DNA of 64,000 bases from Dicyema japonicum (Eukaryota > Animalia > Dicyemida), in NCBI GenBank assembly GCA_011109175.1, contig RDEW01000058.1:6033-70032 (forward strand), given 5' to 3'. A program made the translations under genes and the position numbers. Position 1 is the first letter of the stretch. Each line of letters starts with the position of its first letter. The notes under the pieces were generated by a model. It ran no database searches. It was not told the DNA's origin and was given only the letters and a program-made list of their open reading frames with translations. Positions 2,441 to 55,985 of this stretch are shown here, in pieces.

Positions 2441-2732
2441 GGAAGAGTGACTTTAGACCTTCGCATGAACAATGGTTTGTTTTCATACCTGATTTAGTAA
2501 AAATGTAATATTCATTGACTCCATTTCAATTTTAACAAAGTATATAGACAAATTCGAAAATATCATTTTTTAATAAAAATTGACGTTTGTTCGAATATCG
2601 TCAATTCTTTTGGTCAGTTTCAACAAAGCTCTTGGATATGGCAAAAATTATGATCCATATGGAATCCATAACGAGTGAGTAAGGAGTCTTCGTCTTCTAC
2701 TATGGCAGTGGTTCCCAACCTGGTTCGGGTTC

Positions 2733-2922
2733 GGCTGGCATCGTGGTTAGGTGTCGGGCTAATGAGACTTAGGTTACGGGTACAAATCTCGCTGAAGTTC
2801 ACCTGGTGGAAGGTTCCACGCATCTAAGATGCCAAAAGGGTTTGACGAGTGACTCCGTCATCAGTGGATACTCACTGCGGAACTGTATTGTCTAGAAAAG
2901 ACCCACACACAAGAAAAAAAAT
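2733..2922 (+). mobile_element. tRNA-derived SINE, copy 1
   Basis: A-box-like TGGTTAGG and degenerate B-box GGTACAAATC, a ~130-nt body and an A-rich tail. Near-identical copy at 47752-47938 (minus) with a perfect B-box GGTTCGAATC. Confidence 0.7.
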
Positions 2923-8152: not shown

Positions 8153-8362
8153 TTTATTACGTAATAAAAGGATTATCATATTATTGATTTGGACTCTGAT
8201 TGTTGACATTATAGGCTTAGATTCTAGTCACAAAGACTTTTATAACTTTGTGTAGCGTTATAACGTGGTGTGTCTTGTGGCGTTCTGCTAACATTTATAA
8301 TTATTTTCTTTTTTCCTTTTGAAAATAAATCTTTCACTTTAAAGTTAAATAAAAATATTAAA

Positions 8363-8640
8363 AAAGATGACTTTTTACCTTAAAGATGTCGAGATGACTT
8401 TGGTAAAATGTTCCACTTACCCAAAGGACCCGTTAAAATTAATTTTTATAAGATTTAAAAAAGATGACTTTTTTACCTAAAGATGTCGATGACTTTGGTA
8501 AAATGTTCTACTTACCCATAAAACCCGTTATAATCACTTTTTATAAGATCTAAAGAAGATGACATTTTACTTAAAGATGTCGAGACCTTGGTAAAATCAA
8601 TTTTTATAAAATTTAAAAAAAAGACTTTTTTAAAGATGTC
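8363..8640. repeat. Minisatellite, ~95-nt unit, about 3 decaying copies
   Basis: AAGATGACTTTTTACC(T)TAAAGATGTCGA...TTTGGTAAAATG...TTTTTATAAGAT(T/C)TAAA recurs at about 8363, 8460 and 8555, with a partial copy at about 8620. Confidence 0.85.
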
Positions 8641-14558: not shown

Positions 14559-17500
14559 TATTATTATTATTTTATTTAAAGCACTCCCGAGAAGTCATAA
14601 AATTAATCAAGCCTCCCTTGTGCCGTATTTCTAGCCATCCTCTCTATCAGCCTTTTCCAGGACCCTCTACTTCGTGCCAGTTCCCTTAAGGTATCTAGGT
14701 CGTCTGCGGAAGTGAGCTTCAGTCCCACAGCCGACAGGTCTCCATTCAAAATAGTTGGGAGTGTGACTCTTGGTCTTCCACGGAAACCGGCTCCCGTATG
14801 CATTAGGTAGTTTTCCATGGCGATATTCGCGGGTACTTGAGCATTTAGACGTAAGATATGTCCAAAGAGACTCCATCTTGATCTGAAGATCTCCTCGGAT
14901 AGTATACCAGATTTGCACTTCGAGTAGAGGTCATTGTTTGAGATCTTCTTAGGCCACTTGATCTTGATTACTGATTTCAATTGTGTCCTGTGGAAAGCGT
15001 CAAGACGGTCCATCTCTTGTTTAGAGATTCCCCAAGTGCCTGAATTGTAGGTCAGGACGGGGATGACAAAAGCCTTATATATTCTGAGTTTGGTGTTTAA
15101 TCCCATCCTCTTCTTATGACCCCACATATTCGATACTTTCTTTAGTGCACACATTGCGAGGATTTTCCTCCGAGAAACATCTTCTGAGTCCCCGAGAAGC
15201 GAACCCACCTTCTTTTGCTTTCTCCAAGACTCGTCCGATCTTCGATCATTGCGTGTAAGTGTTGTGAACTCTGTTTTATCGGTGTTAACGGTTAAGAACC
15301 ATTTCGAGAATACGTGTGGAAGAACGTTAAGCATGTGTTGAAGTACTTGAATATCCTCAGAAACAAAGTCCAGGTCGTCCGCGTAGATTATCTCGTTATA
15401 ATTGTTGCCAACCAGGGGTCTGAACTCTCTTAGTGCGGCCTCAAGGTAGACAATAAAGAGGACCGGGGATAGTGAGTCCCCCTGTGGAACTCCACGTGAG
15501 GTCGAAAAAAAGTTAGAGGTAGAGTCACCAATTTTGACGGCAAGTTGAGTGTTCCGCATGAGTAAGTGTATTATTTTGACATCGTCAGGCAGTAGAAAAC
15601 TCTCCAACACTTCCATAAGTTTTCCACGGTCCACCGAGTCGAACGCACGGGACATGTCGATACCAAGTATCTCAATAGATTTTTTGTATTTTTGGCACAG
15701 GGCACAATACCACCTGTGCCCCCATACCACGTCAGCCGTGGACCTGCCCGTCCGGAATCCACTTTGGCCGTCCGAAAGAAATATGTTCACCCTCTCCTTT
15801 ATTCGGTTTAAAGCAATGAGGGATAATGTTTTTCGTATGGAGGTTAGGAGTATAATAGGTCTGAAGTTGTGAGGGGGCCTTTACTTTTTCCCGGTTTTTG
15901 TAGTGGAATTAGCCACCCTTTTCCCAGTTCCAGTTCATCTGCACCCTCGAGAGACCGGTTGAAAATGTTAGTAATCATTTCAATTAGCTCCTCCGGGCCG
16001 TATTGTAAAAGTTCTGCAGTAATGAAGTCTGGTCCGGCAGATCTTCCGGTATTTAATTTTTTAATAGCTTGTTGAGTTTCGGATATGGTAATAGGGCTAG
16101 TTAGAGTGTACTTGTAAGACTTCCGAGATTTCATTGCTTGGTCAGCCGCGTCCTGTTTGTTGAACATAAGGTCAAAATGGGATGCCAGAACGTTTGCTTT
16201 GTTAATGGTCCCGATAACGTCGTGACCAAGGTTGTCATGGACAGTTAACGAAATTGGACAGTTTTCTCTGCTAAGAAGCCGGATTGCTTTGAACATTCTT
16301 GGTCCGTTCTTGTACTTTAATATGTCTGAGATTTTCTCCTCAGCTTCATTTTTGGCAAGGAATCTTTGTATTTGTTTGATCTTCGTTAAGACTCTCCCTC
16401 TCTGGGTGCGCAGTACTTTGATATCTTCCGGAGCGTTTGTGTTTTCCATCCGGAGTCTGAGCTCTTTCTGTGTTACAGAGAGTTGTCCGATATCCGGATT
16501 ACATTGTTTGTGACGAGATTTGGTGATGTGACCAAGCACACTAAAGGCTGTGTTTTGGATAGCAACCACTATTTCATCCCATAAGCTGTTTGTCGGCTGA
16601 TTTTGGTTAATACTGTTGATGCTATCTCTCAGAACTGCACTATAACGACATTTGGTGGATTCTTCGTAGCGTAACCTCTCAGTGTCGAAACGTACTGAGG
16701 TAAGGCCTTTGTGTTTCCCGTGTATTCCATGGATTCTTTTAAGTACTAGCCGGGCGACCACAAGTTTATGATCGCTACTTGTTTCAAGTCCACCGTAAGA
16801 TCTCGAGTCCTGTAGGAGGGCCTTCTGATGTTGCTTGCAGATAATATAGTCGATCTGATTGTATATATTGACTGTGTTTCCAGATTTGCCTTTTCTGGTA
16901 CCAACCCACGTGGTCCTGTGTCTTGCCGGGTGCTTGAAACAAGTGTTGCATATGAGTAGGTTGAATGCCGTGCAAAATTGTATTAATGCCTCTCCGGGGA
17001 TGTTACGGCGGTTTCTACCGTGGGATCCAATACACGTTTCACCAGGTCTTGCTTTTCCGGCCCTGGCGTTCCAGTCCCCGGCGATAAAAAGAAAGTAAGA
17101 GGATGAAAGTGAGTTGTACACACTTGTGAGAGTAGAGTAAAACGTATCCAGTTCTTCGATATTCGTTGATACACGTGCTCCGGTTGGGGCATATACATTT
17201 ATGATGGAGATCACTGAGTTGAGTTTGTTTCCGCATTTGATTTGTAACACCGCGACACGGTCAGATACTGCCCATACTCTTGAGACACAGTGAAACAAGT
17301 GCCGATGAACAGCAAATCCGAGCCCATAGTGCCTGCAGTCTGGTGTGAGGGTCAAAAGGTAAAAATTCTGAAACAGTTCTGCAGATTGTTCGGTTATTTT
17401 CGTCTCTTGCAAACAACAGACAGAGATGTTGTATTTACTCAGATCACGCGCCAATTGTTGTTTCTTGTAGCACTGATTGAGGCCTCGGCAGTTGAGGGAT

Positions 17501-17577
17501 CCAAGAGTGAGGGGAGAAACTGGTAAGCAATACGAAGAAGACATAGTGCAAGTAGAGGGACGTCACCACCTCAAACC
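14559..17577 (-). mobile_element. Full-length RTE-clade-like LINE (~3.0 kb, single ORF, APE plus RT)
   Basis: 13-bp direct repeat ATTTATCTCTCAT at 14546-14558 and 17578-17590 (target-site duplication), (AAT)n tail and ~33-nt 5' UTR. APE motifs CLQET, GDWNA, IDY, SDH; RT motifs GVPQGDSLSP and YADD. Confidence 0.95.
14603..17544 (-). CDS. RTE ORF (~980 aa, endonuclease plus reverse transcriptase), split by one -1 frameshift at the G5 run 15873-15877
   Basis: ORFs 15844-17544 and 14603-15790 join as 'KGP(P)HNFRPIILLTSIRKTLSL...NIFLSDGQSGFR' if one base is added. The related copy at 55860-55960 reads 'GPVENLRPVILL' across the same site. Confidence 0.9.
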
Positions 17578-28499: not shown

Positions 28500-29010
28500 A
28501 GAGGGGAACTGTCTTTTATGATGCATTAAAAATAAGACAAAAGAGGAAACTGGTTTCCTTGTTGCTTGCGACGCTGGAATTGCTGAGTCGTCTAGGAAAT
28601 TTTTGAAGATCCTGGAAATTAGAGGAATGTTGAAACTCTCATGTGGTTCCCTATACAGGCTGATCGACAACACATTATCGAATTCAAAATTGGAGTCCAA
28701 CAAGACGACCCCAGTGGCCCCCTACTCTTTGCCTTGAGCATCGATTATGCAGCATCGGTGATTGGGACTCCACTGAACTTATGGTACCTGGATGATGCGA
28801 TCGTCGGAAGGAATTGCAAATTTTGCTGGCAAAGGTCGAGTACGCCATCTTAGCACTTGCAGCACTCTGGTTGGAACCAAATCCGTACAAATGTGAAATC
28901 ATTAGCGTTGCTTGTTGAGAGGACAACTTTGACCGTGTAATGGCTACGATTTCTACATATCTAAGGAATGTCTCGGTCACTCGACTCGAAAAACGCAATT
29001 TTATCGGCTC
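28500..29010 (+). mobile_element. CRE-clade reverse transcriptase remnant
   Basis: 'GVQQDDPSGPLLFALSI...LNLWYLDDAIVG' corresponds to GVQQGDPLGPLLF / WYLDD of CRE-type RT. Confidence 0.75.
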
Positions 29011-29478
29011 TCTCTAAATGGAAGTAATATGTCAAAAATGCATCTGGAGAAGCTCGATAAACAAAAACGAAATTCCAACAATAAATCTTAATATATCCGA
29101 TACTGAATAAAATTAAACATCGAGATGACCCTTGTTCTTAACAGCAATATCAATCCTGTGTAGACTGTCACGAACACTGGAAAAATTAGTCCTAAAAAGA
29201 ACACGCCATTTTTAAAACTATGTCAGAATAAAAATTCTTATAATTCACTCGCCCAATAAATAAAAAACGGCAGTGATCGGAAAGAGCGCTCATCTCGCGT
29301 TGTAGTTAAAGGACATTTGTAGTTTTGAAAGTATTAATTTTCTTTCTAAATTAAAAGCTAAAATTTTTAAAATAGAAATTTGGAGATATTTGCTAAAATT
29401 TAAATTTATTTTATTAGTATATAAAAATTTCTAATTTTTTGAATAGTTTTTATGTGTTATAATTTTATTTAGGTTTTA

Positions 29479-30333
29479 ATGGCCTCTTTATCAGTGGAAG
29501 AAAATATCTGTGATTTTAGTGACAAATCAATTCGCCTAGGTACATAAATTACCCTAAAAATAGGATTCATCAGAAAAGTGTATTCACTATTATCACTTCA
29601 ACTGCTATACTCAGTCGGCATAATTTGCTTATTTATATTCACGTAATTTTACAAAATGACCAATAGAATTGAGATTAATATCTACATGCGAATCCAAATT
29701 TGGTTTATGTACACAAATATGTATTCCCACGTATAAACATAGGGCCTTTGTCATTGTGATGTTATTCATAAATATTTATCTCTCTTCTTATATTCGCAAA
29801 GTTCCTCAAAATTACATTATGCTTTTCTTATTTGTCAGTTATTAGATTTATTTAGACATTTTTCTTATCTAACTATATGGGGCTGTGACCTGGTTTACTT
29901 GGGGATTATTGTAGTTACTATAATATCTTTGCTGTGCTGATCGCCATTGGAGTGACCGCTGTTATGGCTATTGGGCTTACCTTGTTCAGTTTTCAGACAA
30001 AGGTGTTGTGTGGTTGATTTTAGATCGACTTTACGATAACAGCTGGATGGGCATTCTGTGCAATTTTGGTCTTGATTGTGTTTGGACTGATATTCCCGAT
30101 CTCTCACGTGCCTGTGTTACATAAGGTTTACTCATGTCTGTGTGCCTTGATATTCTGTTGGGTTTGACGGAGACTGATTGTAGTATATTGTGATTGACAC
30201 TCAAATGTTGATGGATGGACATAAAGAGCATACCATTTCACCTGAGGATTATGTGTGGGCTGCACTCAATCTGTATTGTGATTTTGTCAACCTATTCCTT
30301 ACCATTCTGCGTTTATTTAACAAAGATGAATAA
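29479..30333 (+). CDS. TMBIM: Lifeguard/TMBIM (Bax-inhibitor-1 superfamily) membrane protein, ~232 aa, 8 exons; one -1 frameshift at the G4 run 29879-29882
   Basis: Removing seven GT-AG introns (24,24,22,22,22,21,22 nt) gives 'MASLSVEENICDFSDKSIRLGFIRKVYSLL...LTLFSFQTKIDFT...YIVIDTQ...SPEDYVWAALNLYCDFVNLFL...DE*'. The three other copies have G5 at the frameshift site. Confidence 0.9.
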
Positions 30334-31129
30334 ATAATACTGTTTTATTGGTTTGTGAAATCAAATTGCTTTTATTGAGTTTGGTATTTTAATAATTTCT
30401 AACATTGAGAACTCTGAAGTTTCTCTCTCAAGCCTACATCGCACACCATCCTATCACATCTATCCAAATCCCTCAACAAAAGAAAAATTATTATGACAAC
30501 GAGTGACCGAAATCGTCAGAACAGAGACAGGGTCATATTTCTTTGAGAACCATCCGAATACTCGGGATAATAAAATACTAAGTCGTCTCCTCCTCCAATA
30601 GACGGTCTGAATGTTTTCTTTGGGGACATCCGGGTAAACCTGGCTCTTCTTCCTCTACCGACGCACGTATGTAAACTGGATGATGTAAAAGATGTCATGT
30701 CCCCTTTTTTAACCTCTCTATTTCGACAGCAAATCACCTTTTTGAATGTCCTGAGTTAGTGCAATGTTTTCGACAACGACAAGACTTTCCGATATATGGA
30801 GGCAACCGGCAATTGCTGCGTCCTTCTTGATTGTCACTGATCTCGTGCAAGTTAGTTAGATTGGGGTTACTTAACTAACTAACATTGACCTTAAGTTCTT
30901 TACTTTAGTCGAAAGGTACACCTAAGGACATAATTTTATTTTTAGGGTCAATTCTTGTTAAGGGAAACTATTATTATGCTTATTACATGGTCTCCCCTTC
31001 ATGAGGAGTAACTCCCATTGTGGGCTCAGTGTCTGCATTTTAAACAGAGTTCATATCAGCTATGTCAGGTTAATTAATTATTCATAAGTTTGATGTCTCA
31101 TACACCTTATATAGGTTTATTGCATTGAG

Positions 31130-31620
31130 CTCTGTATGCAACAAATTTATGACATTCTCTCACATTTTAAGCAATATTGTTCAAGACTACATGACATTAC
31201 TTCCTTTGTCTCCTAACACTCCAAGGTAGCGATAGCCTTCATGTCCATTAAGAAATTTTACTTCTTCCATACATCTCAGATTAATGGTAGACTTTACAGA
31301 ACTCATCAATATCATTTATCATCTTCACCATTGAATCTTCCTTCTCAGTAAATATTTTTACATCATCAATGAAAAGTAAGTGATTGGTTAAATACGTTAT
31401 CAATGATGAATTACTTTGGAATATGTACAATTTTGGGAATTTATTATTTTAAGTTTTGCTTAAAAGAGCTACGACTAGGTGACACAGATAATAATAATGA
31501 GTGAATCACATGCTTTCTTATCGTCAATCAAGTTGCAAACAAATTATTCCCATATTCATTATTTACACACTGATTGATCCAGTTGTCATAAAAATTGTCG
31601 TGGTATGAAATGACAGAATC
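31130..31620 (-). mobile_element. R4/Dong-like non-LTR RT remnant (partial copies at about 36100-36620 and 40790-41300 include a nuclease fragment)
   Basis: 'NLIDDKKACDS', 'NHLLFIDDVKIF' and 'GYRYLGV'. At about 36130-36250, 'TDSEIQHNNPSIVVYDKMKNEIVIIEV' matches the HNRPDIVV.DK...IIEV nuclease motif. Confidence 0.6.
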
Positions 31621-31689
31621 TATCTAATTAGAGCACCTAATTGGGTTCTAAATATGATGATTTATCATTTAACTTTTTATAAGCCTACC

Positions 31690-32760
31690 TGTTATCTTTT
31701 GCTGTTAATGTAACTGGTTTTGTAACCAATTTTAAATTTTTAAAAGCAATAATATAATTAATATATTATTCAAAATACGTAATAAAATTGAATAAATAAA
31801 TTAAATAGAATAAAGTAACTAAATCTTATTTCTAACCAAAATCCTTATTTTCTATAGTCATGTTAGCATTAATTAATTACGATTGCGACACATGCCAAGC
31901 ACGTTGTCTGGGTTTCTTATTGCACTACAGACTGAAATAATATTTATAATTACATATTCGATATGTTGATTGGTAGAATAACCTAATTGTATTAATATCA
32001 AAAAATACATTCCATCATTATTTAGATATATCTCAGTAAAGACAGGTTTAAATCTAAACTAAAAATAATTCTATACGCTTGTGGTATGTTAAATGGATCA
32101 AAATAATGCAAGAATACTAATTTAATATTAAGAATACCCTTCTAATCGAACATTATCTGAAAGAGCTACTCTAAAAGATTGTATAATAGAATCAGTAGGA
32201 AAATAACTATAAATTAATAATATAACTTACACATGTTCGAGATTTATCAGTGTTTCTGCAAAATTGATATGTATAAGTGTCAGTCCATAACAAGTTTTGA
32301 ATGACTAACAATTTAAAATATATAAAACATTGCTATAATTGTACCTAGGAAACGTATTCGAATGAATAGTTGTAATACTATGATCATTTTGGCAACGACT
32401 ATAAATAATTTATATATAATACAAATTTTCAACATTCAATGTATCAAATGAAAAAATATTTCCGTCATGTATAGTAATGTTTCGTACATTAAGAATTGTA
32501 TCTCTGAATCGTAGTTAAGTTCAGGATTATTCCGAGTTGACAGTCAATCCAATATCTGTAATAATAAATGATTATAAATATTACACATTGATACGATCAA
32601 TTACTTGATCGTTACATTCTTTTATCATAGTCGTGTAATAAAACATTGTTGTAAAGATAACAGAATAGTACATCATAATTATTGCATCAATTTACGGAAT
32701 TTGTTTTATAAACCTATTAATTAATTCATATTTCACTATCCATAGCGTCGACAATGCGCT
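31690..32760 (-). pseudogene. Degenerate micro-intron gene, putative BspA-like LRR surface protein (copy A)
   Basis: About 10 GT-AG introns, mostly 18-31 nt, on the minus strand. Spliced peptide includes 'SITTIHSNTFP', 'FKTCYGLTLIHINF', 'YFPTDSIIQSF' and a hydrophobic end 'VTLFYLIYLFNFIT'. Contains indels and stops. Confidence 0.55.
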
Positions 32761-32999
32761 CACACTTGTGCACAAATTAGAAATATATTTTTCCTATAAA
32801 ACCTTCCCAACAGCTTATCAGTTTCCATAATATCTTTTAATGTCACAACTATTAATCTCAAAACACGTTTCCGCGTATTTTACATATTTCCATATGATTA
32901 AACAACATGCTCAAAGTCAGTGCTTTGAACGGTGATGATTTTTATTCTTCCGAGTGGTGTTTTTGAACTACAAATTTATTAAAATATTGAAAAATCATC

Positions 33000-33900
33000 A
33001 CTATTATGACTTTTGTTTTTAATAAAGTGAAAGAAATTTACGACAATAGTGATTATTTCTGCAATGTCTTGAGAATTGGATTCAATCAAATCATTGAGTC
33101 TTATAATGAGTTTGACGACCATTACTTGGATATTTATAGAAAACAAATTTTTGTAAGAATCAATTTAAATTAATTTCACTTAAATATTGTTATGGTAAAT
33201 CACATAATTTTTCTGTTGCATATTGATTTTAATGGTGCTTTAGATTGTTCTTGATTTTATATTTGGATATTTGTAGATCTTAGTAATCTGCTCTTTTACT
33301 TTGCGTAAATTTCGCTCTAATTTTTGAAGGTAAATAAGATCTCAAATGGCTGATTATTTTAAAATGAGAGACCATTTTGACAATCCGTACTAACAATCTG
33401 TGATGTATGACTTAATAATTTAATTAATTGTAATATTTGTCTTGAACAAAAATATTGTATTTTAATTCTTTAACAATTTTATCCCTTTGTTTTTAGTTAT
33501 TCATTAGCTAATCATATGTTATTTCTTATTCAATTGATAGTTATTACTTCTTTAAGTATAGTGTGAGTTCTGTCGCAGGTGAGGTTCATGTAATGGAAAT
33601 ATTACCTGCTTTTTGTTTGAAGGGCGTTTTTATAATTAAGGTTAACAATAAGGAAAACTGATGCTTATTTGAAAATTCTAAATTAATTAACACAATTTTA
33701 TATTTCGAAAAGTACTTAGATATTTCAAATCTTTGTTAAGAGACTGCGCGTGATTTCACAAGCATACAGAGAGTGCATATAAGTATTAAATGAGCAATCA
33801 ATTTTTTTATCAAATAATTACGTTGAGTTCATGAAATTAGAAGCAGATAAGTGATAAAATTATAAGCAATTCCTTTATAACCATGCTCGTTGGAGAAGGG
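33000..33900 (+). pseudogene. Unidentified decayed segment with donor/acceptor-like sites (repeated at about 37730-38580 and 42440-43080)
   Basis: Frame 'NEFDDHYLDIYRKQIF' is followed by GTAAG in copies A and B, plus a 25-nt GT...AG. No recognisable product. Confidence 0.25.
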
Positions 33901-33999
33901 GAATTTAAACTGGTTGTTCAGCTGTGCTTAAAAATAGGTAGTGGACTATGTAAAGCATTTTTTCTGAATTAGACTCTATTGCTGGTTTTCTTCTAAAGT

Positions 34000-34640
34000 T
34001 GGGCCTGATGCAGAAATATCTGATCTCCTCTACTGGAAAGTTGGGAAAATATCATATCTCCTAACAATTATCGACCAGATGAATAAGGAAGACAAAGTTG
34101 AGTGGGTTTCGAAAGTTTCCGAGTATCCCAGGCAAGATTGGGAGACTATCTCGAAGTGGATGGCCTTTAATAGGGAAAACCTTCATTAAAAATTTCATAC
34201 GTAAAGTCCATGGAAAATCGGAAGAGGTCGTCAAAATTTAAACCAAAGTGGTTTATTGCTCAAATAGATCGGAGAACTTGGAAATATATTCAACAATCGG
34301 AATATCATATTAAGGAGATGCTATAGATGGGTTCTACTACCAAATTCGTGAATTGATGTTGATCCCTCGCGATGGTCGTAAACCTACGTAGAAAGTTCAG
34401 TACCAACTTCTTAAAAAGGAGGTTGTATTTGCTAGTAACCCCACAATCATATTAAGTGTCCACCATAAACAATATTACAGATTTTATTTTTTCTAGACAA
34501 TTTATTAAAGTCACAAATTAATAAAAATGGTACTAAATAAAAAACAAAGACAAATACAAGAGCAGCAATGCATAGCAACTCTTCCCGCCCTCCGGGAACT
34601 TCGATGGTTAAATTCTTCACGAAAGAAGACAAGAGGCTGT
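34000..34640 (+). mobile_element. Degraded CR1/L2-like RT C-terminal remnant (copies at about 38700-39360 and 43130-43640)
   Basis: 'DWETISKWMAFN', 'IGELGNIFNN' (DLGVIFD-like) and 'LPALRELQWLNLHERRQ' (L..L.W..L.ERR). Confidence 0.5.
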
Positions 34641-34889
34641 GCACGTCTGAAGAATCTAAATTCGCAAACGGAATCTCTATAAAGATGTTTAAAGCAGGAC
34701 CAGATTCCATGACAAAGAAAGCGGAACCCACTCGTGAAACCGATACGAGAGCGACCGACACTTCTAGTACATACTCTTACAAACTGACTATTCAGATCTC
34801 AGTCGACTCTGCTATGAGTGCGATTAAGATCTCTAACGTATTGATATCATTAAGATCTTACTTATACGACAAATCACGATATATTAGCA

Positions 34890-35362
34890 TGAGCCAGAAG
34901 AAATTATCTGTGATTTTAGTTACCAATCAATTCGCTTAGGTACATAAATTATCCTAATAACAGGATTCATTAGAAAAGTGTATTCACTATTTTCACTTTA
35001 AATAACATTCTAAGTCGGCATAATCTGCTTATTTATATTCACGTAATTTTACAAACTAACCAATAGACTTAAGATTCATATCTACATGAATGTCCAAATT
35101 TGGTTTATGTACACAAATATGTATTGCCACGTATAAAATAGGGCCTTGGTCATTGAGATGTTACTTAAAAAAACATTTTTTTCTACTTTTATATGCAAAG
35201 TTCCTATAAATTACATTATGCTTTTTTTATTTGTCACTTTTTAGATTTATTTAGACATTTTTCTTTTCTAACTAGATGGGGGATGTGACCTGGTTTACTT
35301 GGGGATTATTGTTGTTACTATAATATCAATGCTGTGTTGATAGCCATTGAGTGACCACTGTT
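34890..35362 (+). pseudogene. Truncated TMBIM pseudogene
   Basis: Matches exons 1-6 of 29479-30333 but lacks the ATG. Has TAT>TAG, a mutated intron-5 acceptor (GTTG) and no 3' exons. Confidence 0.9.
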
Positions 35363-36609
35363 GGTAAAGCTGACTCGTCTCTCTCTAACGACGCAAGTAT
35401 GTAAACTGGATGATGTAAAAAATGTTTTGTCCCCTTTGTAACCTCTCTGATTTGACAGCAAACCACCTTTTAAATGTCCTGAATTAGTGAAATGTTTTTT
35501 TTACAACGACAAGACTGTCTAATATATGGAGGCAACCTACTTAATTGCCGTTAGTCTCCTACAAGTTAATGAGATTTGGGTTACTTAACTCACTAACATT
35601 TACTTTGTCCTTATGTTCTTTGCGTTAGTCAGTACCTGCAGATTAAACTGAGTTCATATTAGTTTTTTCAGGTTAATTAATTATTTATAAGTTTGATGTC
35701 TCATAGACCTTAGGACACGTGTGCTTCTCCTTAAGAATTTTCTTCATATTTGAGATGCTCTTTCTATTTGAAAACCTCCATTGATACAACCAACAACTTC
35801 ACTCGTCCACCAGCACTTGGCTAATTTTTATAGACGAAATAGGAGTCAATTGTTCTATGAGATCCAAAATTGGAAGATCTATAAAAGGAATTACTCCATA
35901 AAATATTTTAGAAACATAAGAAAAAAATTTCTCTATTTGTGCTGCTAGTTCAGTGGACGGTCTTTTACATTACAAAATCAATTCCTCCATTATCGTGCTG
36001 AGACGTTCATTGATTTTGTAATCAGTATATTATAAGCTTGAACATGCATGGGAAAAAGTATGGTCATATGTTATATTCAAAACATGCTATTGATATGTGA
36101 GTGCTTCTTGTGAGGTGATTCAACTTCTATAATCACAATCTCATTCTTCATTTTGTCATACACAACAATGCTTGGATTATTGTGTTGAATTTCACTGTCA
36201 GTCTCGGGCTATTATTTTGACTGGTTAACCATTTCGAAGATCCGGCTAGGTCAACGTTTCATCTTCGTAACTGTTAAACAGCATAGAATGAAGTGGCATC
36301 TTCTCAATCGAATCAATCGTCCTTTCTCTGGTTTTATGATAGTCTTTATATTAACATGTAGATTTATCCGAACATCAATACATGACACAATAATCAGGTG
36401 AGTGAATCACATGCTTTCTTATCGTCAATCAAGTTGCAAACAAATTATTCACATATTTATTATTTACACACTGATTGATCCAGTTGTCATAAAAATTGTC
36501 GTGGTCATGAAATGACAGAATCTATCTAATTAGAGCACCTAATTGGATTCTAAATATGATGATTTATCATTTAACCCTTTATAAGCCTACCTGTTATCTT
36601 TTGCTGTTA

Positions 36610-37680
36610 ATGTAACTGGTTTTGTAACCAATTTTAAATTTTTAAAAGCAATAATAGAATTAATATATTATTCAAAATACGTAATAAAATTGAATAAATA
36701 AATTAAATAGAATAAAGTAACTAAATCTTATTTCTAACTAAAATCCTTATTTCTATAGTCATGTTAGCATTAATTAATTACGATTGACACACATGCCAAG
36801 CACGTTGTCTGGGTTTCTTATTGCACTACAGACTGAAATAATATTTATAATTACATATTCGATATGTTGATTGGTAGAATAATCTAATTGTATTAATATC
36901 AAAAAATACACTCCATCATTACCTAGATATGTATTCTTGGTATCAGATTTATATCTAAATTAAATCTAATTCTATACGCTTGTGGTATGTTAAATGGATC
37001 AAAACATAATGCAAGAATACTAATTTAATATTAGGAATACCCTTTTAATTCAATATGATAAGAAACAGCAATCCTAAAAGATTGTATAATGGAATTAGTA
37101 GGGAAATAACTATAAATTAATAATATAACTTACACATATCCGAGTTTTATCAGGTTTTCTGCAAAATTTATATGAATAAATATAAGTGCGTGACAAGTTT
37201 CGAAATTTCTATAAATTAAAATATATAAAACAATCCTATAATTGTGATTGGAAATAAATTTGAATGAATAGTTGTAATACTACGATCTTCCGCGCATTGA
37301 CTATGAATGATTTATATTATAATACAATTTTTTAAGATTCATTCTCTCAAATGATAGAATGTCTGCGGGCAGTAGAGTAATGTTGCTTGCATAAAGAATT
37401 GATATCTCTGAATCGTAGCTCAGTTTAGGATTACTGTCAAATTGACAGTCCGTCCAAAATCTGTGATAATAAATAAATTTAAATAATACACTTTGTTCCT
37501 AACGATTGCTTGATCGTAACATTTCCTAATCATTGTCGAGTAAAAAAACATTGCTGTGAAGATAACGGAATTGTACATCAGAATTATTATATCAATTTAC
37601 GAAATTTGTGTTATAAACCAATTAATTAATTCATATCTCACCGTGAATAAAGTAGTCGTGGCGTGACACTTGTGCATAGC
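36610..37680 (-). pseudogene. Putative BspA-like LRR surface-protein pseudogene (copy B)
   Basis: Spliced: 'FWTDCQFDSNPKLSYDSEISILYASNITLLPADILSF...QCAEDRSITTIHSNLFP|NFETCHALIFIHINFAENLIKLGYV|YFPTNSIIQSFRIAVSYHIELKG|ILALCFDPFNIPQA|YKSDTKNTYLGNDGV|LFYQSTYRI|FCSAIRNPDNVLGMCVN'. Example intron 37110-37133 (24 nt). One donor is lost. Confidence 0.55.
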
Positions 37681-39589
37681 TTGAAAATATTTATTCCAAT
37701 AAAACCTTCCCACGTGCTTGTTTTTACTTAAAGTGAAAGAAATTTACGACAATAGTGATTTTTCTGCAATGTCTTGAGAATTGGATTCAATCAAATCAAT
37801 GAGTCTTATCAATGAGTTTGACGACCATTACTTGGACATTTATAGAAAACGAATTTTTGTAAGAATAAATTTAAATTAATTTCCCTTAAATATTGTTATT
37901 GTAAATAACATGATTTTTCTGTTGCATATTGATTTTATTGGAGCTTTAGAGTGTTCTTGATTTTATATTTGGGATATTTATAGATCTTTTTAATCTGCTC
38001 TTTTACCTTGCGTAATATTCGCTCTATTTTTTGAAGGTAAATAAGGTCACAAATGGCTGATTATTTTGAAAATGAGAGACCATTTCGCCAATCCGTTCTA
38101 ACAATTCTAGATGTATGAAATAATAATTTATTTAATTGTGATATTTGTATTTAACAAAAATATTGTCTTATATTTACATTAACAATTTAATCCTTTTATT
38201 TTTAGTTATTCAGTGGCTTATATATATTATTACCTATTCAATTGATGGTCATTACTTGTTTAAATAAAGTGTGAGTTCTGTCGCAGGTGAGGTTCAAGTA
38301 ATGGAAATATTACCTGCTTTTTATTTGAAGGGCATTTTTTATAATTAAGGTTAACAATAAGGAAAACTGATACTTATTTGAATGTTCTGAATTAATTAAC
38401 ACAATTTTATATTTCGAAAATTACTTAGATATTTCAAATCTTTGTTAAGAGACTGCGCGTGATTTCACAAGCATACAGAGAGTGCATATAAGTATTAAAT
38501 GAGCAATCAATTTTTTTATCAAATAATTACGTTGAGTTCATGAAATTAGAAGCAGATAAGTGATAAAATTATAAGCAATTCCTTTATAACATGCTCAAAG
38601 TCATGCTCGTTGGAGAAGGTGAATTTAAACTGGTTGTTCAGCTGTGCTTAAATATAGGTAGTGGACTATGTAAAGCTGTCTTTCTGAGTTAGACTCTATT
38701 GCTAGCATTCTGGTAAAGTTGGATTTGATGCAGAAATATCTGATCTCCTCTACTGGAAAGTTGGCAAAATATCATATCTCCAACGATTATCGACCAGATG
38801 AACAAGGTGGACAAAGTTAAGTGGATTTCGTAAGTTTCCGAGTATCCCTAGCAAAATTGGAAGACTACCTCGAAGTGGATGGCCTTTAATAGGGAAAACC
38901 TTCATTAAAAATTTCATACGTAAAGTCCATAGAAAATCGGAAGAGGTCGTCTAAATTTAAACCAAAGTGGTTTATTGCTCAAATAGATCGGAGAACTTGG
39001 AAATATATTCAACAATCGGAATATCATATTAAGGAGATGCTATAGATGGGTTCTACTAACAAATTCGTGAATTGATGTTGATCCCTCGCGATGGTCGTAA
39101 ACTTACGCAGAAAGTTCAGTACCAACTTCTTAAAAAGGAGGTTGTATTTGCTAGTAACCCCGCAATCATATTAAGTGTCCACCATAAACAATATTACAGA
39201 TTTTATTTTTTCTGGACAATTAATTAAAGTCACAAATTAATAAAAATGATACTAAATAAAAAACAAAGACAAATACAAGAGCTGCAATGCATAGCAACTC
39301 TTCCCGCCCTCCGGGAACTTCAATGATTAAATCCTTCACGAAAGAAGACAAGAGGCTCTGCATGTGTGAAGAATCTAAATCCACAAACGGAATTCCTATA
39401 AGATGTCCAACTCATAACCAGATAAGAAAGCAGAACCAATTAGTGAAACCGATACGAGAGGGACCGACACTTCTAGTACATACTCTTACAAACTGACTAT
39501 TCAGATCTCAGTCGACTCTGCTATGAGTGCGATTAAGATCTCTAACGTAATGTACTTATACGACAAATCACGATATATTAGCATGAGCC

Positions 39590-40062
39590 AGAAGAAATTA
39601 TCTGTGATTTTAGTTACCAATCAATTCGCTTAGGTACATAAATTATCCTAATAACAGGATTTATTAGAAAAGTGTATTCACTATTATCACTTCAAATAAC
39701 ATACTAAGTCGGCATAATCTGCTTATTTATATTCACGTAATTTTACAAACTAACCAATAGACTTAAGATTCATATCTACATGAATGTCCAAATTTGGTTT
39801 ATGTACACAAATATGTATTGCCACGTATAAACATAGGGCCTTGGTCATTGTGATGTTACTTAAAAAAACATTTATCTCTACTTTTATATGTACACAAAGT
39901 TCCTCAAAATTACATTATGTTTTTTTTATTTGTCACTTTTTAGATTTATTTAGACATTTTTCTTATCTAACTAAATGGGGGCTGTGACCTAGTTTCCTTG
40001 GAGATTATTGTAGTTACTATAATATCAATGCTGTGGTGATAGCCATTGGAGTTACCGCTGTG
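39590..40062 (+). pseudogene. Truncated TMBIM pseudogene
   Basis: Same truncation points as 34890-35362; in-frame TAA at the NYM codon. Confidence 0.9.
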
Positions 40063-41299
40063 GGTAAACCTGGCTCGTCTCTCTCTAACGACGAAGTATG
40101 TAAACTGGATGATGTAAAAAATGTTCTCTCCCCTTTTAACCTTCTGATTTGACAGCAAACCACCTTTTAAATGTCCTGAATTAGTGAAATGTTTTTTTAC
40201 AACGACAAGACTGTCTAATATATGGAGGCAACCTACTTAATTGCCGTTGGTCTCCTACAAGTTAGTGAGATTTGGGTTTACTTAACTCACTAACATTTAC
40301 TTTGTCCTTATGTTCTTTGCGTTAGTCAGTACCTGCAGATTAAACAGAGTTCATATTAGCTATGTCAGGTTAATTAATTATTTATAAGTTTGATGTCTCA
40401 TACACCTTAGGACACGTGTGCCCCTCCTTAAAAATATTCTTGACATTTGAGATGCTCTTTCTATTTGAAAACCTCCATTGATACAACCAACAACTTCACT
40501 CGTCCACCAGCACTTGGCTAATTTTTATAGACGAAATAGGAGTCAATTGTTCTATGAGATCCAAAATTGGAAGATCTATAAAAGGAATTACTCCATAAAA
40601 TATTTTAGAAATATAAGAAAAAAATTTCTCTATTTGTGCTGCTAGTTCAGTGGACGGTCTTTTACATTACAAAATCAATTCCTCCATTATCGTGCGGAGA
40701 CGTTCATTGATTTTGTAATCAGTATATTATAAGCTTGAACATGCATGGGAAAAAGTATGGTCATATGTTATATTCAAAACATGCTATTGATATGTGAGTG
40801 CTTCTTGTGAGGTGATCTTAACTTCTATAATTACATTCTCATTCTTCATTTTGTCATACACAACAATGTCTGGATTATTGTGTTGAACTTTACTGTCAGT
40901 CTCGGGCTATTATTTCGACTGGTTAACCATTCCGAAGATCCGGCTAGGTAAACGTTTTCATCTTCATAACTGTTAAACAGCATAAAATGCAGTGGCATTT
41001 TTTCAATAGAATCAATCAGTCCTTTCTTCTGGCTTTCTATGATAGTCTTTATATTAACATGACTAGATTTATCCGAACGTCATAATACATGACACATATA
41101 ATCATGGTGAGTGAATCACATGCTTTCTTATCGTCAATCAAGTTGCAAACAAATTATTCACAAATTCATTATTTACACACTGATTGATCCAGTTGTCATA
41201 AAAATTGTCGTGGTTATAAAATGACAGAATCTATCTAATTGAGAACCTAATTGGCTTCTAAATATGATGATTCATCATTTAATCCTTTAAAGCCTACCT

Positions 41300-42390
41300 G
41301 TTATCTTTTGTTGTAATTGTAGCTGGTTTTGTAACCAATTTTAAATATGTAAAAGCAATAAGGAATAGAATTAATATATTATGCAAAATACCTAATAAAA
41401 TTGAATAAATAAATTAAATAGAATAAAGTAACTAAATCTTATTTCTAACCAAAATCCTTATTTTCTATAGTCATGTTAGCATTAATTAATTACGATTGCC
41501 ACACATGCCAAGCACGTTGTCTGGGTTTCTTATTGCACTACAGACTGAAATAATATTTATAATTACATATTCGATTTGTTGATTGGTAGTATTTCCTAAT
41601 TATATTAATATCAAAAAATACAGTCCATTATTACCTAGATATGTATTCTTGGTATCAGATTTATATCTAAATTAAATCTAATTCTATACGCTTGTGGTAT
41701 GTTAAATGGATCAAAACATAATGCAAGAATACTAATTTAATATTAAGAATACCCTTTTAATTCAATATGATAAGAAACAGCAATCCTAAAAGATTGTATA
41801 ATGGAATTAGTAGGGAAATAACTATAAATTAATAATATAACTTACACATATCCGAGTTTTATCAGGTTTTCTGCAAAATTTATATGAATAAATATAAGTG
41901 CGTGACAAGTTTCGAAATTTCTAAAAATTAAAATATATAAAACAATCCTAAAATTGTGATTGGAAATAAATTTGAATGAATAGTTGTAATACTACGATCT
42001 TCCGCGCATTGACTATGAATGATTTATATTATAATACAAATTTTTAAGATTCATTCTCTCAAATGATAGAATGTCTGCTGGCAGTAGAGTAATGTTGCTT
42101 GCATAAAGAATTGATATCTCTGAATCGTAGCTCAGTTTAGGATTACTGTCAAATTGACAGTCCGTCCAAAATCTGTGATAATAAATTGATTTAAATAATA
42201 CACTTTGTTCCTAACGATTGCTTGATCGTAACATTTCCTAATCATTGTCGAGTAAAAAAACATTGCTGTGAAGATAACGGAATTGTACATCAGAATTATT
42301 ATATCAATTTACGAAATTTGTGTTATAAACCAATTAATTAATTCATATCTCACCGTGAATAAAGTAGTCGTGGCGTGACACTTGTGCATA
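41300..42390 (-). pseudogene. Putative BspA-like LRR surface-protein pseudogene (copy C)
   Basis: Nearly identical to copy B, including the lost splice donor. Confidence 0.55.
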
Positions 42391-43879
42391 GCTTGAAAAT
42401 ATTTATTCCAATAAAACCTTCCCACGTGCTTGTTTTTATTTAAAGTGAAAGAAATTTACAACAATAGTGATTTTTTCTACAATGTCTTGAGAAATGGATG
42501 CAATCAAGTCAATTAATGTTATTAAGAAGTTTTACGACCACTACTTGGACATTTATAGAAAACAAATTTTTGTAAGAATCAATTTAAATTAATTTCACTT
42601 CAACATTGTTGTGGTAAATTACATGATATTTCTTTTGCATATAAATTTTTAATGGTACTAATGATTATTAGTTGAATTTAAATTTGAGATATTTATAGAT
42701 CTTGGTAATCTGCTTTATTACTTTGAGTAATATTCGCTCTATTGTTTTAGAAAGTAAAAAAATAAAGTGAAAACTATCACAAATGGCTGAATATTTCTAA
42801 AATGAGAGACCATTTCGCAAATCCGTACTGACAGTCTGAGATGTGTGATATAATAATTTATTTAATTGTGATATTTGTTTTTAACAAAAATATTGTATTA
42901 TATTACTTTTACAATTTATTTTTTCATGTTTTAGTTATTCATTGGCTTATAATATATTGTTTCCAATTCAATTGATAGTTAAACAGATCTGAATTGAAAA
43001 AAATATCATAAGTATTAACTGAGCAATCAATTTCTCTTCCAAATAATTACGTTGAGCTTTAAAATTAGAAGCGAATGAGTGCGCGGTTTTTTCAATTTTT
43101 TTTATGGTATTCTGCTAAAGTTGTTTCGGAATTTCCGAGTATCCCAGGCAAGATTGGGAGACTACCTCGAAATAGATGGCCTTTAATAGCGAAAACCTCT
43201 ACTGAAAAATTTCATACGTTAAGTCCATAGAAAATCAGAAGAGGTTGTCAAAATTTAAACCAAAGTGACCTATTGCTCAAATATCGGAGAACTTGGAAAT
43301 ATATTCAACAATCGGAATATCATATTAAGGAGATGCTATAGATGAGTTCTACTACCAAATTCGTGAAGTGATGTTGATCCCTCGTGATGGTCGTAAACCT
43401 ACGCAAATAGTTCAGTACCAACTTCTTAGAAAGGAGGTTGTATTTGCTAGTAACCCCGCAATCAAATTAAGTGTCCACCATAAACAATATTACAGATTTT
43501 ATTTTTTCTGGACAATTAATTATGTCAAATTAATAAAAATGGTACTAAATAAAAAACAAAGACAAATACAAGAGCAGCAATGCATAGCAACTCTTCCCGC
43601 CCTCCGGGAACTTCAATGGTTAAATCTTCACGAAAGAAGACAAGAAGCTGTGCATGACTGAAGAATCTAAATCCGCAAACGGAATCCCTATAAGGATGTC
43701 CAACTCATAACCAGATCAAGAAAGCTGAACCAATTAGTGAAACCGATACGAGAACGACCGACATACTCTGACAACCTGAATATGCAGATCTCAGTCGACT
43801 CTTCTATGAGCGCGATTAAGATCGCTAACGTATTGTACCTTTACGACAAATCACGATATATGAGCATGAGCCACAGAGG

Positions 43880-45450
43880 ATCGGCCACCTTCCGGCACGG
43901 ATTCTATAGCAACTCTGAAAAAATGGCCTTTATAGAAGCCGTGAACGATAATATCCTTTTTGGACAGTCATCTCTTCAGAATTATAACAACGAAGTCATT
44001 GGAGTTTGTAAAAAAACTTACCCTTTTGGGATGAGGCTAGCGACCTCCTGAAGTACCTCCAAAAGATGGCTCCATCCACTACGAAGGTCTCTCGAATGTC
44101 AAGAGGAGGACAGACGTTGCCAAAGGTCAAGGCGTAAGTTGGGAACAAATCAGAGGCCAAATCGCCAGTCCGCTGTGGATTTTCTATTGGAAGAAACGTG
44201 ATCACTTGCGAATGGATGCAAAGAGGGCCGTTGATCTGTTATTGCTGCCACCAAATCGAGCACTTGGCATACCAATGTGAGGAGAAGAAGTGTTTCCGAT
44301 GTGCAGAGGAACACGAGGTGGATCCAAGATCAAAAAAATTTGTGTCAACTGTGGATCTCCTAAGCACGGGGCCAGATATGGAGGGTGTCCATGATATTAG
44401 AAGCTAAACATGAACTTGATGCCCGCAACAACAAAATGGAATCAAGACAGAATGTTAACACCAAAGTTGAACCAATAACGAAACACCGCTCAAAAGAAAC
44501 ACGGTTTAGAGCCAATGAAACCGACAGAGAGAAGAATAATCGGCCTCCAAAAATTAAAAATGAACTGGTTCAACAGACACGAGAATCGGTTTGGTAGACT
44601 TAGAACAACATGCCTGAAAAGATCTCCAAATAACTAGAGGATGTAATCTCAAAGTTACAGGAACTCAGTAAAATCCTAGGAGTGGATATAAAAAAGATGG
44701 TGGACCTGCAATGGAGAGTCCAGGCCACCTAAAAAACAATTGAAGAGGTCTAAAAATAGTGTCGGTACTGCCCGATCTCTGAAAAAAAGCATCATGATCA
44801 AACACTGCTTTTGACAGCCATCGGGATTGACTTCCTGGTGGTCAAAGTAAAAAAAGACAAACACTACTAAAATGGAAGGATTCAACTCTATAGTAATACC
44901 CTGGACGGAAGGCTGCGACTGGTAGGGAAACCACCCTTTTCTACCGTGATGACCATCAAGCATGGAACCCGAATATCATCACAATTTCACAATGCGAATT
45001 CGTGTCCATTGAGATACGTTGCTGTGGCTCGTGGATAAGTATCGGGGTCTATATTCAAAAAGTATCACAAACTGTTCTTCACAGATCATAGAATTTTTTG
45101 AAAAAAATAAAATGTCAATTTTGGTGGGCGACCTAAACGGCAACAACGTTGTCAAACTTTGTTTGTCAATTACACGTGCTGCTTCAGGAAATCCTTTAAG
45201 GAGCGCTGATACTGCACTTCTGATTTAACCTTATGTTCCCTCTATAGCAGAATTACTACATGAATGTGAACTATGGTTTTTCCAGCGACATGATCCCATC
45301 GTTTCTTATGTTAAGAGGATTTCGGAGACGCCGGACATTGCAGACCGAAGTGAATAGTTTCAAAAATTAAAGAAGGTGACTAGTCTGGCTTCGCCTCAAC
45401 GGGAAAAGTTCATCTCATCAATTTTGAAACACTAAAACAAATAAAATCAG
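43880..45450 (+). mobile_element. Degraded 5' part of an I/Jockey-group LINE (ORF1 with three CCHC knuckles plus APE fragment)
   Basis: 'CYCCHQIEHLAYQC', 'KCFRCAEEH' and 'CVNCGSPKHGARYGGCP' (frameshifted), then 'SILVGDLNG' (APE GDxN motif). Confidence 0.75.
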
Positions 45451-54429: not shown

Positions 54430-55985
54430 AGGATTATCATAGGCAACTATCGTAGAAACATAATTGTTATATTTCCACACGAGCTTAAAGCGATTTTTCT
54501 GATCAATCTCGTCCATCCTCCCCTGTTACACGTCAAACTTTCCATAGCATCCAGATGCTTGCCATTTACGAGCCTCCGGTTGATTGCTTTGAGATCCCGG
54601 TAGCGTAGTACGCGGGCGCCCCCGATATTTTTTTCCACTTGCAGCGAAATATTCCTCCATTGCCAAATTTGCAGGTGATGTGGGACGTGTTCAAACAGTC
54701 TCCATAGGGCCTCCACCACATCTTAAGTCACAGGTCGCGTTGAGCACTTCCGGTGCAGTGCCTCATTGATGATCCGTGTCGGCCATTGTACCCCGCACAG
54801 TATTCGTAATTGCATTCGGTGGAAGGAGTTAAGATTTTTGGTTTCTGAGACCTAGGTCCTCCAGCAAAAAAAGTTATATAACAAGACCCGCTTCACAAAA
54901 GCATTGTAGAGGCGCGATTGTTACCGGTCTGTTAGTCAACCAATCCGTCTTCATCCTGTTAAGTGCGACCGTCGATAGTACTTTTCTTCGGTTATGTCTC
55001 ATTGTCTCCGAGGAGGGAGCCGAGCTTTCTGGAACGTCTCCATTCCTCTTCCAATCTTGATCCCATCGTACGATTTCCACAAAATCAGTTTTAGTTGTAT
55101 TCACCGTAAGAAACCATTTCCCAAGCTCTGCAGGAGCAACGTCAAGTACCCGCCTCATGGCTGGTTTATTTTCCGATACAAAATCCACATCATCAGCGTA
55201 TATAATTTCGGTGATTTGGCTATTATACAAACTTTGAAGACCACGTAGTGCTGCTTCCAGGTATACCACAAACAGCAAAGGGGAAAGGGAGTCTCCCTGG
55301 GGGTACCCACAATCGTCGAAAAATTTCTGGACGACGTACTCCCAGTTCTTTGCTCGATAATAAAACTTGTATCATCCTGACAGAATCCCTATTAAGTTAA
55401 AAGTTAACTACTAACTAAGTGATCCCGGTTTTCCGGGTTCTGGCTCTCGTTCGGGGTCCTCAAAGATCCAACAGAATTGGTAAAAACGGGGACGGTCTCA
55501 TTCTCCATAGATTCCCTACATTTTCTAGATAGTCGGATGTAGAAAGTGAATGCGGACATCCTGTTTTCATTGCCTACTGTAGAAATGACTTCACTCTCCA
55601 CCTTAGATATTCTTGGGGTAAAAAATCTCTATTAAGGAATCCCCAAAGCAGCAATAAGCTTTCCTTGGCGTATTGTGTCGAAAGCTCTCGACGTGTCGAT
55701 CCCCAAAATTGTAGTCTCACTCTCAAATCTTTGGTAAGTGACACAACGCCACCTATGCCCCCAGACCACATCAGCGGTAGATCTGCCTGTCCTGAATCCA
55801 CTGTGGCTCGAGGACAGGAATTCATTCACAGGCTCTTACACACGATTCAGCACCACCAGAGCAAGGACCTTTCTTAGCGTATTGAGTAGGATGACTGGGC
55901 GCAGGTTTTCCACAGGGCCCGCCCTTTTATTCGGTTTTTGAATCGGGACCAGATTTCCTTTACCCAACAGAAGGTCGTTAGTTGC
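54430..55985 (-). mobile_element. 5'-truncated, frameshifted RTE (second subfamily), interrupted by an insertion at 55397-55628
   Basis: 'GPVENLRPVILL', 'SGFRTGRSTADVVWGHRW', 'GVPQGDSLSP', 'IIYADDVDF' and 'WRLFEHV' are collinear with the intact RTE. Confidence 0.85.
55397..55628. mobile_element. 232-bp LINE 3'-end insertion with an 8-bp direct repeat and an internal inversion
   Basis: CTATTAAG at 55389-55396 and 55629-55636. The left part is the reverse complement of the 49350-49500 family; the last ~20 nt (TTCTTGGGGTAAAAAATCT) match that family's terminus in forward orientation. Confidence 0.65.

Follow-up and report, generated by a model that had tools for sequence, protein, structure and literature searches.

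Micro-exon genes (MEGs) of Schistosoma form a parasite-specific family of secreted products, with symmetric exons of 6–36 nt and long introns. In genes of the major histocompatibility complex (MHC), introns are homogenised by recombination and the selected exons stay diverse. Snake-venom phospholipase A2 and three-finger toxin genes show accelerated exon evolution beside conserved introns, including the 'segment switch in exons' termed ASSET (PMC2474615, PMC2711939), and the BspA-like proteins of bacteria, Trichomonas and Entamoeba, with leucine-rich repeats (LRRs) of the TpLRR type, are large, fast-diverging extracellular families of host-associated organisms with many pseudogenes (PMC2843621). 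Here we describe a family of micro-intron genes in the dicyemid Dicyema japonicum, a parasite of octopus, three copies of which (A, B and C) form a tandem array in a 64,000-nt stretch of its genome (contig RDEW01000058.1, scaffold C332 in our numbering, C332:6033-70032; hereafter the window). At a probability of roughly 65%, we regard it as an orphan Dicyema japonicum gene family, probably encoding a small secreted, cysteine-bearing protein, that diversifies by duplication and by exchange among paralogs.

The published genome of Dicyema japonicum comprises 67.5 Mb in 377 scaffolds, with 36.7% GC and very short introns (PMC6736024); our searches covered 67,542,437 bases in 377 contigs. Within the window, direct-repeat families with spacings of 4.7–5.4 kb outline the array:

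29459..43835, no strand assigned: tandem array of three units
about 29459-34858: unit A
34859-39552: unit B
39553 to about 43835: unit C

In the repeat comparison, units B and C are 93–99% identical, and unit A matches them at 62–84% across most of its length. Each unit contains one AT-rich, multi-exon gene stretch of ~1.1 kb on the minus strand, and the positions of its GT..AG micro-introns are identical in copies A, B and C. This repeat structure and the shared splice positions bear out the original prediction of three tandem units with hidden minus-strand micro-intron genes. Its statement that copy A departs strongly from B and C with intron positions kept also holds: the genes of B and C are ~97% alike, and copy A reaches 75–80% identity to them in exons 1–5.

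We aligned twelve near paralogs, in which short GT-to-AG blocks are almost invariant and the intervening stretches variable, and used these near-invariant blocks to anchor the exon/intron model. Copy B then has nine exons and eight coding introns, all GT..AG, with lengths for I1 to I8 of 29, 25, 23, 24, 21, 23, 26 and 22 nt, fewer than the ten or so per unit proposed before. The three genes of the array are laid out as follows:

37611..37617, minus strand: TATA-like TTTATAA of copy B, 33 nt 5' of the start codon, conserved in near paralogs
37490..37578, minus strand: copy B exon 1, 89 nt; start codon at 37578 conserved across paralogs; hydrophobic N-terminus
37326..37460, minus strand: copy B exon 2, 135 nt; its expected frame is open, and phase-2 introns I1 (29 nt) and I2 (25 nt) flank it
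37232..37300, minus strand: copy B exon 3, 69 nt; encodes SITTIHSNLFP
37134..37208, minus strand: copy B exon 4, 75 nt; encodes NFETCHALIFIHINF
37041..37109, minus strand: copy B exon 5, 69 nt; encodes YFPTNSIIQSF
36978..37019, minus strand: copy B exon 6, 42 nt; encodes ILALC.DPFN and is followed by the conserved 23-nt I6
36910..36954, minus strand: copy B exon 7, 45 nt; shows the highest variability of all exons
36855..36883, minus strand: copy B exon 8, 29 nt; between I7 (26 nt) and I8 (22 nt)
36774..36832, minus strand: coding part of copy B exon 9, 59 nt including TAA; encodes CSAIRNPDNVLGMC, with a stop that agrees with the divergent subfamilies
41486..42290, minus strand: copy C gene, intact; 612-nt coding sequence, 0 internal stops, 8 GT..AG introns
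42202-42290, 42038-42172, 41944-42012, 41846-41920, 41753-41821, 41690-41731, 41622-41666, 41567-41595, 41486-41544, minus strand: copy C exons
31873..32673, minus strand: copy A pseudogene, 12 stops after splicing
32585-32673, 32423-32555, 32329-32398, 32231-32304, 32138-32206, 32077-32116, 32009-32053, 31954-31982, 31873-31931, minus strand: copy A exons

Introns 1–7 are all in phase 2, and exons 2–7 measure 135, 69, 75, 69, 42 and 45 nt; being multiples of three between phase-2 introns, each of these exons is frame-neutral. The exons were joined to compute the length of the coding sequence (CDS), internal stops, cysteines, N-glycosylation sites and N-terminal hydropathy. The spliced CDS of copies B and C is 612 nt long (203 codons plus stop) with zero internal stops; in copy A, four exons measure 133, 70, 74 and 40 nt, which disrupts the frame and leaves the 12 stops. 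The earlier view that all three copies are inactivated therefore applies to copy A and fails for B and C. The peptide motifs quoted before are real translations, SITTIHSN.FP of exon 3, F.TC..L.FIHI of exon 4 and YFPT.SIIQSF of exon 5. Among 15 paralogs a W, a C and an L of exon 2 are invariant, and exon 7 has a mean pairwise identity of 64% with length changes in multiples of three. In the exon alignments, conservation extends to the Cys and hydrophobic columns. An apparent in-frame stop after exon 6 disappears in the model with the 23-nt I6.

Two alternative models were rejected. An upstream ATG at ~37677 with an 88-nt intron, proposed as the gene start and first intron, gives a frame that closes immediately, and this ATG is not conserved, in contrast to the start at 37578. 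An intron starting at GTTTAG within exon 7 would need a GT that is absent in B, C and two further loci (L009, L010), and I6 restores the frame in all copies. We infer that TTTATAA at 37611..37617 is a promoter element; a CACGTG palindrome lies ~95 nt upstream of it (window 37711-37716, minus strand). As in Schistosoma MEGs, symmetric exons keep the frame upon loss, gain or skipping, a symmetry that holds here for exons 2–7, and annotation based on open reading frames (ORFs) easily misses such genes. Unlike MEGs, the Dicyema genes have exons of 29–135 nt and tiny introns, and they fall outside the MEG definition of a CDS lying mostly in exons of ≤36 nt.

The same architecture recurs throughout the genome. 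The ~1.1-kb gene stretch has 47 DNA matches elsewhere, at least 14 of them near full length at 76–86% identity. With exon 2 as query, 18 genomic places were found, and a 24-column profile of exon 4 reached 99 places on more than 40 contigs (81 below E 1e-3); the order of exon types was the same at 18 of 20 sampled places from the latter search. The exact 22-nt intron 8 occurs 20 times in the genome and once more with one mismatch, always in family loci, and the reversed-pattern control yielded zero genomic occurrences. At least nine members lie on scaffold C332. An uninterrupted frame was present in seven of ~28 modelled loci, namely B, C, L019, L020, L023, L025 and L027, which span four subfamilies with 29–39% protein identity between them. 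The last five of these are the intact paralogs for which a genome search had been proposed. The remaining modelled loci have insertions or frameshifts, or have lost splice sites or the start codon. Disruptions affect 11 of the 14 near-full copies and are also seen at divergent loci; most exons of such disrupted copies still have their own frame open, a state that points to recent decay.

One nine-exon plan with multiple-of-three exons, repeated at dozens of loci down to 29–39% protein identity, is far beyond chance, and the idea of a hidden micro-intron gene family in an animal parasite is borne out. The family comprises ~80–100 loci, tandem and dispersed, many of them decayed, and has so far been seen in Dicyema japonicum alone. 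Text searches of the literature turned up no paper on such a family in dicyemids, and in the searched text of the genome paper there is no mention of LRRs or of the family (PMC6736024). Six distant members (L041, L043, L044, L050, L054 and L055) have a common conserved stretch of 120–150 nt upstream, translating as ...LLNFMVKLLNKSENHVNCVNLIKLFFNF..., which differs from the region preceding the genes of the window's subfamily and may represent a repeat or a subfamily-specific promoter.

Introns and exons of this family diverge at very different rates. In the twelve near paralogs, introns are 88–99% identical and exons 64–87% (mostly ~75%), and identity amounts to 82% over the upstream 150 nt, 85% over the downstream 150 nt and 51% further out. 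A compositional cause, in which only A<->T changes would be allowed, was rejected, since each substitution class taken by itself shows introns evolving ~2–3-fold more slowly: per A/T site, A<->T changes amount to 0.109 in exons versus 0.054 in introns, and transitions per site to 0.106 versus 0.031. When mostly intact loci were compared, introns were 85–97% identical where exons were 57–68%. L023 and L024 share 50% of residues, 68% of exon bases and 97% of intron bases at a synonymous divergence (dS) of 0.56, and the corresponding values for copy B and L019 are 33%, 57% and 85.5%. A general constraint on tiny introns was likewise discarded, because a control pair on the same scaffold displays the reverse pattern:

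C332:88521-88721 and 89398-89595: tandem RPB10 (RNA_pol_N) genes L056 and L057, 18.5 kb past the window end, with a single intron at the same position

The exons of this pair are 61–66% identical, its 24-nt intron agrees at 10 of 24 positions (42%) and its 5' flank at 50%. Within the family, intron identity declines roughly in step with exon identity, at about one third the rate. Broken copies retain their introns as well as intact copies do, and between B and C, the youngest pair, the differences are not depleted in introns.

Three accounts of this pattern are considered. According to the first, exchange would homogenise the non-coding parts and selection would keep the exons diverse, as in MHC genes, with which the family has in common non-coding DNA far more alike than coding DNA, high synonymous divergence near variable sites and signs of recombination. 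In contrast to the alleles of one MHC locus, however, the Dicyema copies are paralogs on many scaffolds, dead ones included, and no immune function is implied by the comparison. The second account is an accelerated, patch-wise change of exons, as known from the snake toxins (PMC2474615, PMC2711939); in the third, the introns would have a role, specific to this family, in the splicing of hypervariable exons. The latter two fit somewhat better than pure homogenisation because intron and exon identity fall roughly together; that introns are well preserved even in dead copies is better explained by the first. Intron conservation is notable here because weak splice-site motifs have been reported for Dicyema japonicum in a recent survey (PMC13644364).

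Exchange between copies has left mosaics. Relative to copy B, copy A is 75–80% identical in exons 1–5, 100% in exon 6, 67% in exon 7 and 96–99% from exon 8 to the 3' end, and a 13-nt block of exon 7 has been replaced wholesale between identical flanks. Locus L010 combines an L007-like 5' end with L004-like exons 3–5 and L009-like exons 6–8, the loci lying on four scaffolds. Copies B and C differ by 25 substitutions over 1101 aligned nt (30 differing columns including indels). Six of the substitutions lie together in a 27-nt stretch where exon 8 begins, at its boundary with I7, and C there has states that occur in other paralogs. The PHI test returned 0.394 against 0.455 ± 0.007 in permutations (p ≤ 0.001), and recombination among copies is significant; pairwise differences are over-dispersed, to which the different rates of exons and introns contribute. 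Together, the mosaics and the PHI result support a fast-evolving family in which decayed copies take part in exchange. Of the earlier suggestion that the copies are silent relics or donors, the part on donors fits, as decayed copies join the exchange and dead copies are possible donors, and the part on relics does not extend to the intact B and C.

The ratio of non-synonymous to synonymous substitution rates (dN/dS, Nei-Gojobori), a check proposed with the original prediction, has a divided outcome: 1.65 in exons 7–8, 0.86 overall and 0.67–1.53 within subfamilies. The snake-venom toxin families are similar in their cysteine-bearing secreted products (secretion being predicted for Dicyema), in tandem duplicates whose exons are more divergent than introns and flanks, and in short exon segments replaced wholesale between near-identical copies. 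They differ in having introns of hundreds of bases instead of 21–29 nt and in belonging to a venom system, which Dicyema lacks; moreover, the overall dN/dS of the Dicyema family is not above 1, and its mosaics point to exchange beyond point mutation alone.

A hydrophobic tail, VTLFYLIYLFNFIT, had been proposed as the C-terminus, and can be reached only through an unsupported 62-nt ninth intron (GTAATTAATTAATGCTAAC...). We rejected this intron: divergent subfamilies have neither a GT donor at its site nor the tail sequence, and their frame stops one to eleven codons past the last Cys (...TGC GGA TAG and similar); in addition, a one-base indel separates B and C just downstream of the stop/ninth-intron site. 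The frame of the main subfamily reads ...C-x-x-R-N-stop, its TAA lying inside GTAATTAA, and alternative splicing of the ninth intron may occur in that subfamily. The proposed tail falls within the following feature:

36600..36773, minus strand: conserved stretch 3' of the copy B stop, most likely non-coding, which contains the 'hydrophobic tail'

Mean identity in this stretch is 85% among paralogs and 99% between A and B, and paralog homology stops ~150–170 nt past the stop codon. Most likely, then, the 'hydrophobic tail' belongs to a conserved 3' stretch that does not code for protein. With the supported stop just after the last Cys, no hydrophobic C-terminus is left for the membrane or glycosylphosphatidylinositol (GPI) anchor that had been suggested.

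All subfamilies have a hydrophobic N-terminus (in copy B, residues 4–17 have a mean Kyte-Doolittle hydropathy of 1.64) and share seven conserved cysteines, and in the supported model the product has no hydrophobic C-terminus. Because a signal-like N-terminus and seven conserved cysteines are combined with the absence of a membrane anchor, the product is probably a small secreted, disulfide-stabilised protein acting extracellularly, plausibly at the interface with the host renal sac. The process we envisage is that the product would enter secretion via its hydrophobic N-terminus and act outside the cell, and that the family would diversify as its genes duplicate, change rapidly in their exons and exchange short tracts with paralogs. 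Dead copies could serve as sequence donors, and exchange, or a family-specific constraint, would keep the non-coding parts uniform. We also considered germline cassette exchange, in which near-invariant micro-introns and flanks would act as homology joints and frame-neutral exons or patches would be swapped among ~100 paralogs, dead ones included; this is a speculative account that we hold to be unlikely.

Several points weigh against an orphan family of diversifying secreted proteins. Splice junctions, expression and secretion are predictions from sequence, and the putative signal peptide is based on hydropathy alone; in B and C its n-region lacks positive charge. With a dN/dS under 1 overall, diversifying selection is not proven beyond local stretches, and dS far exceeds intron divergence, which selection on the protein alone cannot explain. 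The RPB10 control consists of a single intron. The majority of sampled copies are broken, and the family could be largely decaying. Finally, a known fold could have been missed by searches made exon by exon.

This last point leads to the best-surviving rival, a highly diverged beta-solenoid, of LRR or other type, in which each exon would encode one structural repeat and which would be too distant from the known LRR classes to be detected in single exons. Exons 3–5, all of 23–25 codons and in the same phase, together with alternating hydrophobics in L.FI.I-like strands and cysteines near both ends that resemble capping motifs, give it some appeal, yet no Asn/Cys ladder position is present. We addressed LRRs exon-wise, using single exons, read-through ORFs and exon profiles. 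A Pfam hmmscan at E<=10 assigned no family to exons 1–5 of copy B, and nothing relevant was found in read-through ORFs of 45–123 aa spanning two to three exons in other members. Six-frame scans of the genome gave three matches to LRR_5 (PF13306), all at C312:144k, and 113 to LRR_8, many in exon-sized pieces, with none of either at family loci. Profiles of exons 2, 3, 4 and 5 retrieved no LRR chain from 177,635 distinct sequences of the Protein Data Bank (PDB), whereas a positive-control profile, built from eight 24-residue repeats of the C312:144k LRR gene, retrieved 154 LRR chains at E≤0.001 (best 2e-34). An hhalign comparison of the exon-4 profile with this control profile from the same genome gave a probability of 0.3%, and profile-profile comparison among exons 2, 3, 4 and 5 revealed no repeat homology. 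On this evidence, we regard a hidden solenoid as unlikely.

The source of the control repeats (L034, C312:143000-146500) is a transmembrane LRR gene of conventional type: it has an LRRNT-like CPVLCTC, over ten typical repeats and a hydrophobic span. It lies in long open frames, so ordinary LRR genes are easily detected in this genome. The exon-2 profile, of 44 positions and limited sensitivity, was searched against 1.84 billion representative proteins and found no relative with LRRs and none from bacteria or protists; its four weak matches were to repetitive proteins (DUF5853, CHU_C, Mucin2_WxxW and HYR). For exon 2, the ESM Atlas offered no usable match.

A second rival holds that the copies are a non-functional repeat with relic frames, conserved only through youth or homogenisation; it could be a gene family that has died, or a 1.3-kb unit of mobile or satellite-like nature. 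Such a repeat would account for the 11 broken copies among 14, for broken ones among the divergent loci, for an overall dN/dS close to 1 and for non-coding parts better kept than coding ones. It is harder to reconcile with the seven of ~28 loci, in four subfamilies, that maintain a full frame through eight intact GT..AG introns, with a far larger share of exons open in frame than neutral decay would leave at 25% divergence, and with length changes in threes. Nor do the copies have terminal repeats; their homology ends ~150 nt on either side, in differing contexts. The exon-2 profile found no transcript-derived protein among the 1.84 billion, but the library apparently does not contain this genome, and its silence is uninformative on expression. 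We consider this explanation improbable.

The weakest rival is the one put forward in the original prediction, a BspA-like (TpLRR, LRR_5) surface adhesin, membrane- or GPI-anchored and possibly of bacterial origin. It drew on a likeness of F..C..L..I.I in exon 4 and S-I-T-T-I-x-S-N-x-F in exon 3 to the TpLRR motifs AFxxC...LxxIxI and SVTxIGxxAF (PMC2843621). This likeness to LRR skeletons is real as a short spacing motif only, and no test supports membership: the published TpLRR pattern (PMC2843621) is absent from every single exon, and the F..C-type motifs, judged by eye, are irregularly spaced, 24, 9 and 25 residues apart. We dismiss this rival as highly improbable, given that neither single exons nor read-through ORFs match LRR_5, that the genome scan for it hits only the unrelated C312:144k, that the exon profiles find no LRR in the PDB, that the exons are not detectably repeats of one another, that the exon-2 profile has no bacterial or protist relative to suggest a lateral origin, that the ORF ends without a hydrophobic tail and that the genes have eight spliceosomal introns. 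As large, fast-diverging families with many pseudogenes in host-associated organisms, and in their short F..C..L..I.I-type motif, the two are alike (PMC2843621). They are set apart by the missing profile match and regular 23-residue repeat, a product of ~200 residues compared with a mean of 539, eight introns compared with almost none in Trichomonas, the lack of a transmembrane tail and the lack of detected relatives outside this genome.

Between its genes, the array carries transposon debris and a 285-nt high-copy repeat. The latter (~285 nt, at about 35819-36100 in unit B, with a counterpart in unit C; alignment query 214-3761) has more than 30 genome copies at 81–89% identity and no ORF or Rfam match, and may be an element resembling short interspersed elements or miniature inverted-repeat transposable elements. 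An Rfam search of 29000-44500 returned no match at E<=1, and a Pfam search of the ORFs between the array genes no match. Elsewhere in the window, a near-complete retrotransposon without long terminal repeats (a long interspersed element) occupies 14603-17544 on the minus strand, with a 566-aa ORF for an endonuclease/exonuclease/phosphatase domain (Pfam 4e-8) and a 395-aa reverse-transcriptase ORF (4e-27). Further reverse-transcriptase fragments are located at 54874-55278 (minus strand) and about 28640-28850 (plus strand), and an ORF resembling a zinc knuckle at 44198-44407 (plus strand). Two long ORFs of 283 and 172 aa lie at 59242-61093 on the minus strand; the shorter matches Mediator subunit Med1 below the threshold (E 2.6e-4, 20.6 bits, cut-off 25) and is possibly an exon of a Med1 gene. 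A tandem repeat at 8358-8597 has a 95-nt unit in 2.5 copies with 87% matches.

For genome annotation, the family is a warning that gene finding based on ORFs or on repeat-masked sequence overlooks such genes. It is also a natural case in which to ask how introns of 21–29 nt are recognised and why they stay letter-perfect beside hypervariable exons. If cassette exchange were true, an animal with ~5,000 genes would possess a diversified secreted repertoire, and the retained introns would belong functionally to the machinery of diversification or splicing instead of being a by-product. Dicyemids are among the simplest animals, and with ~5,000 predicted genes, 80–100 loci represent a sizeable share of the gene set. 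A fast-diverging, probably secreted repertoire of this kind is a natural candidate for the interface between parasite and host in the cephalopod kidney, of which molecular knowledge is almost nil.

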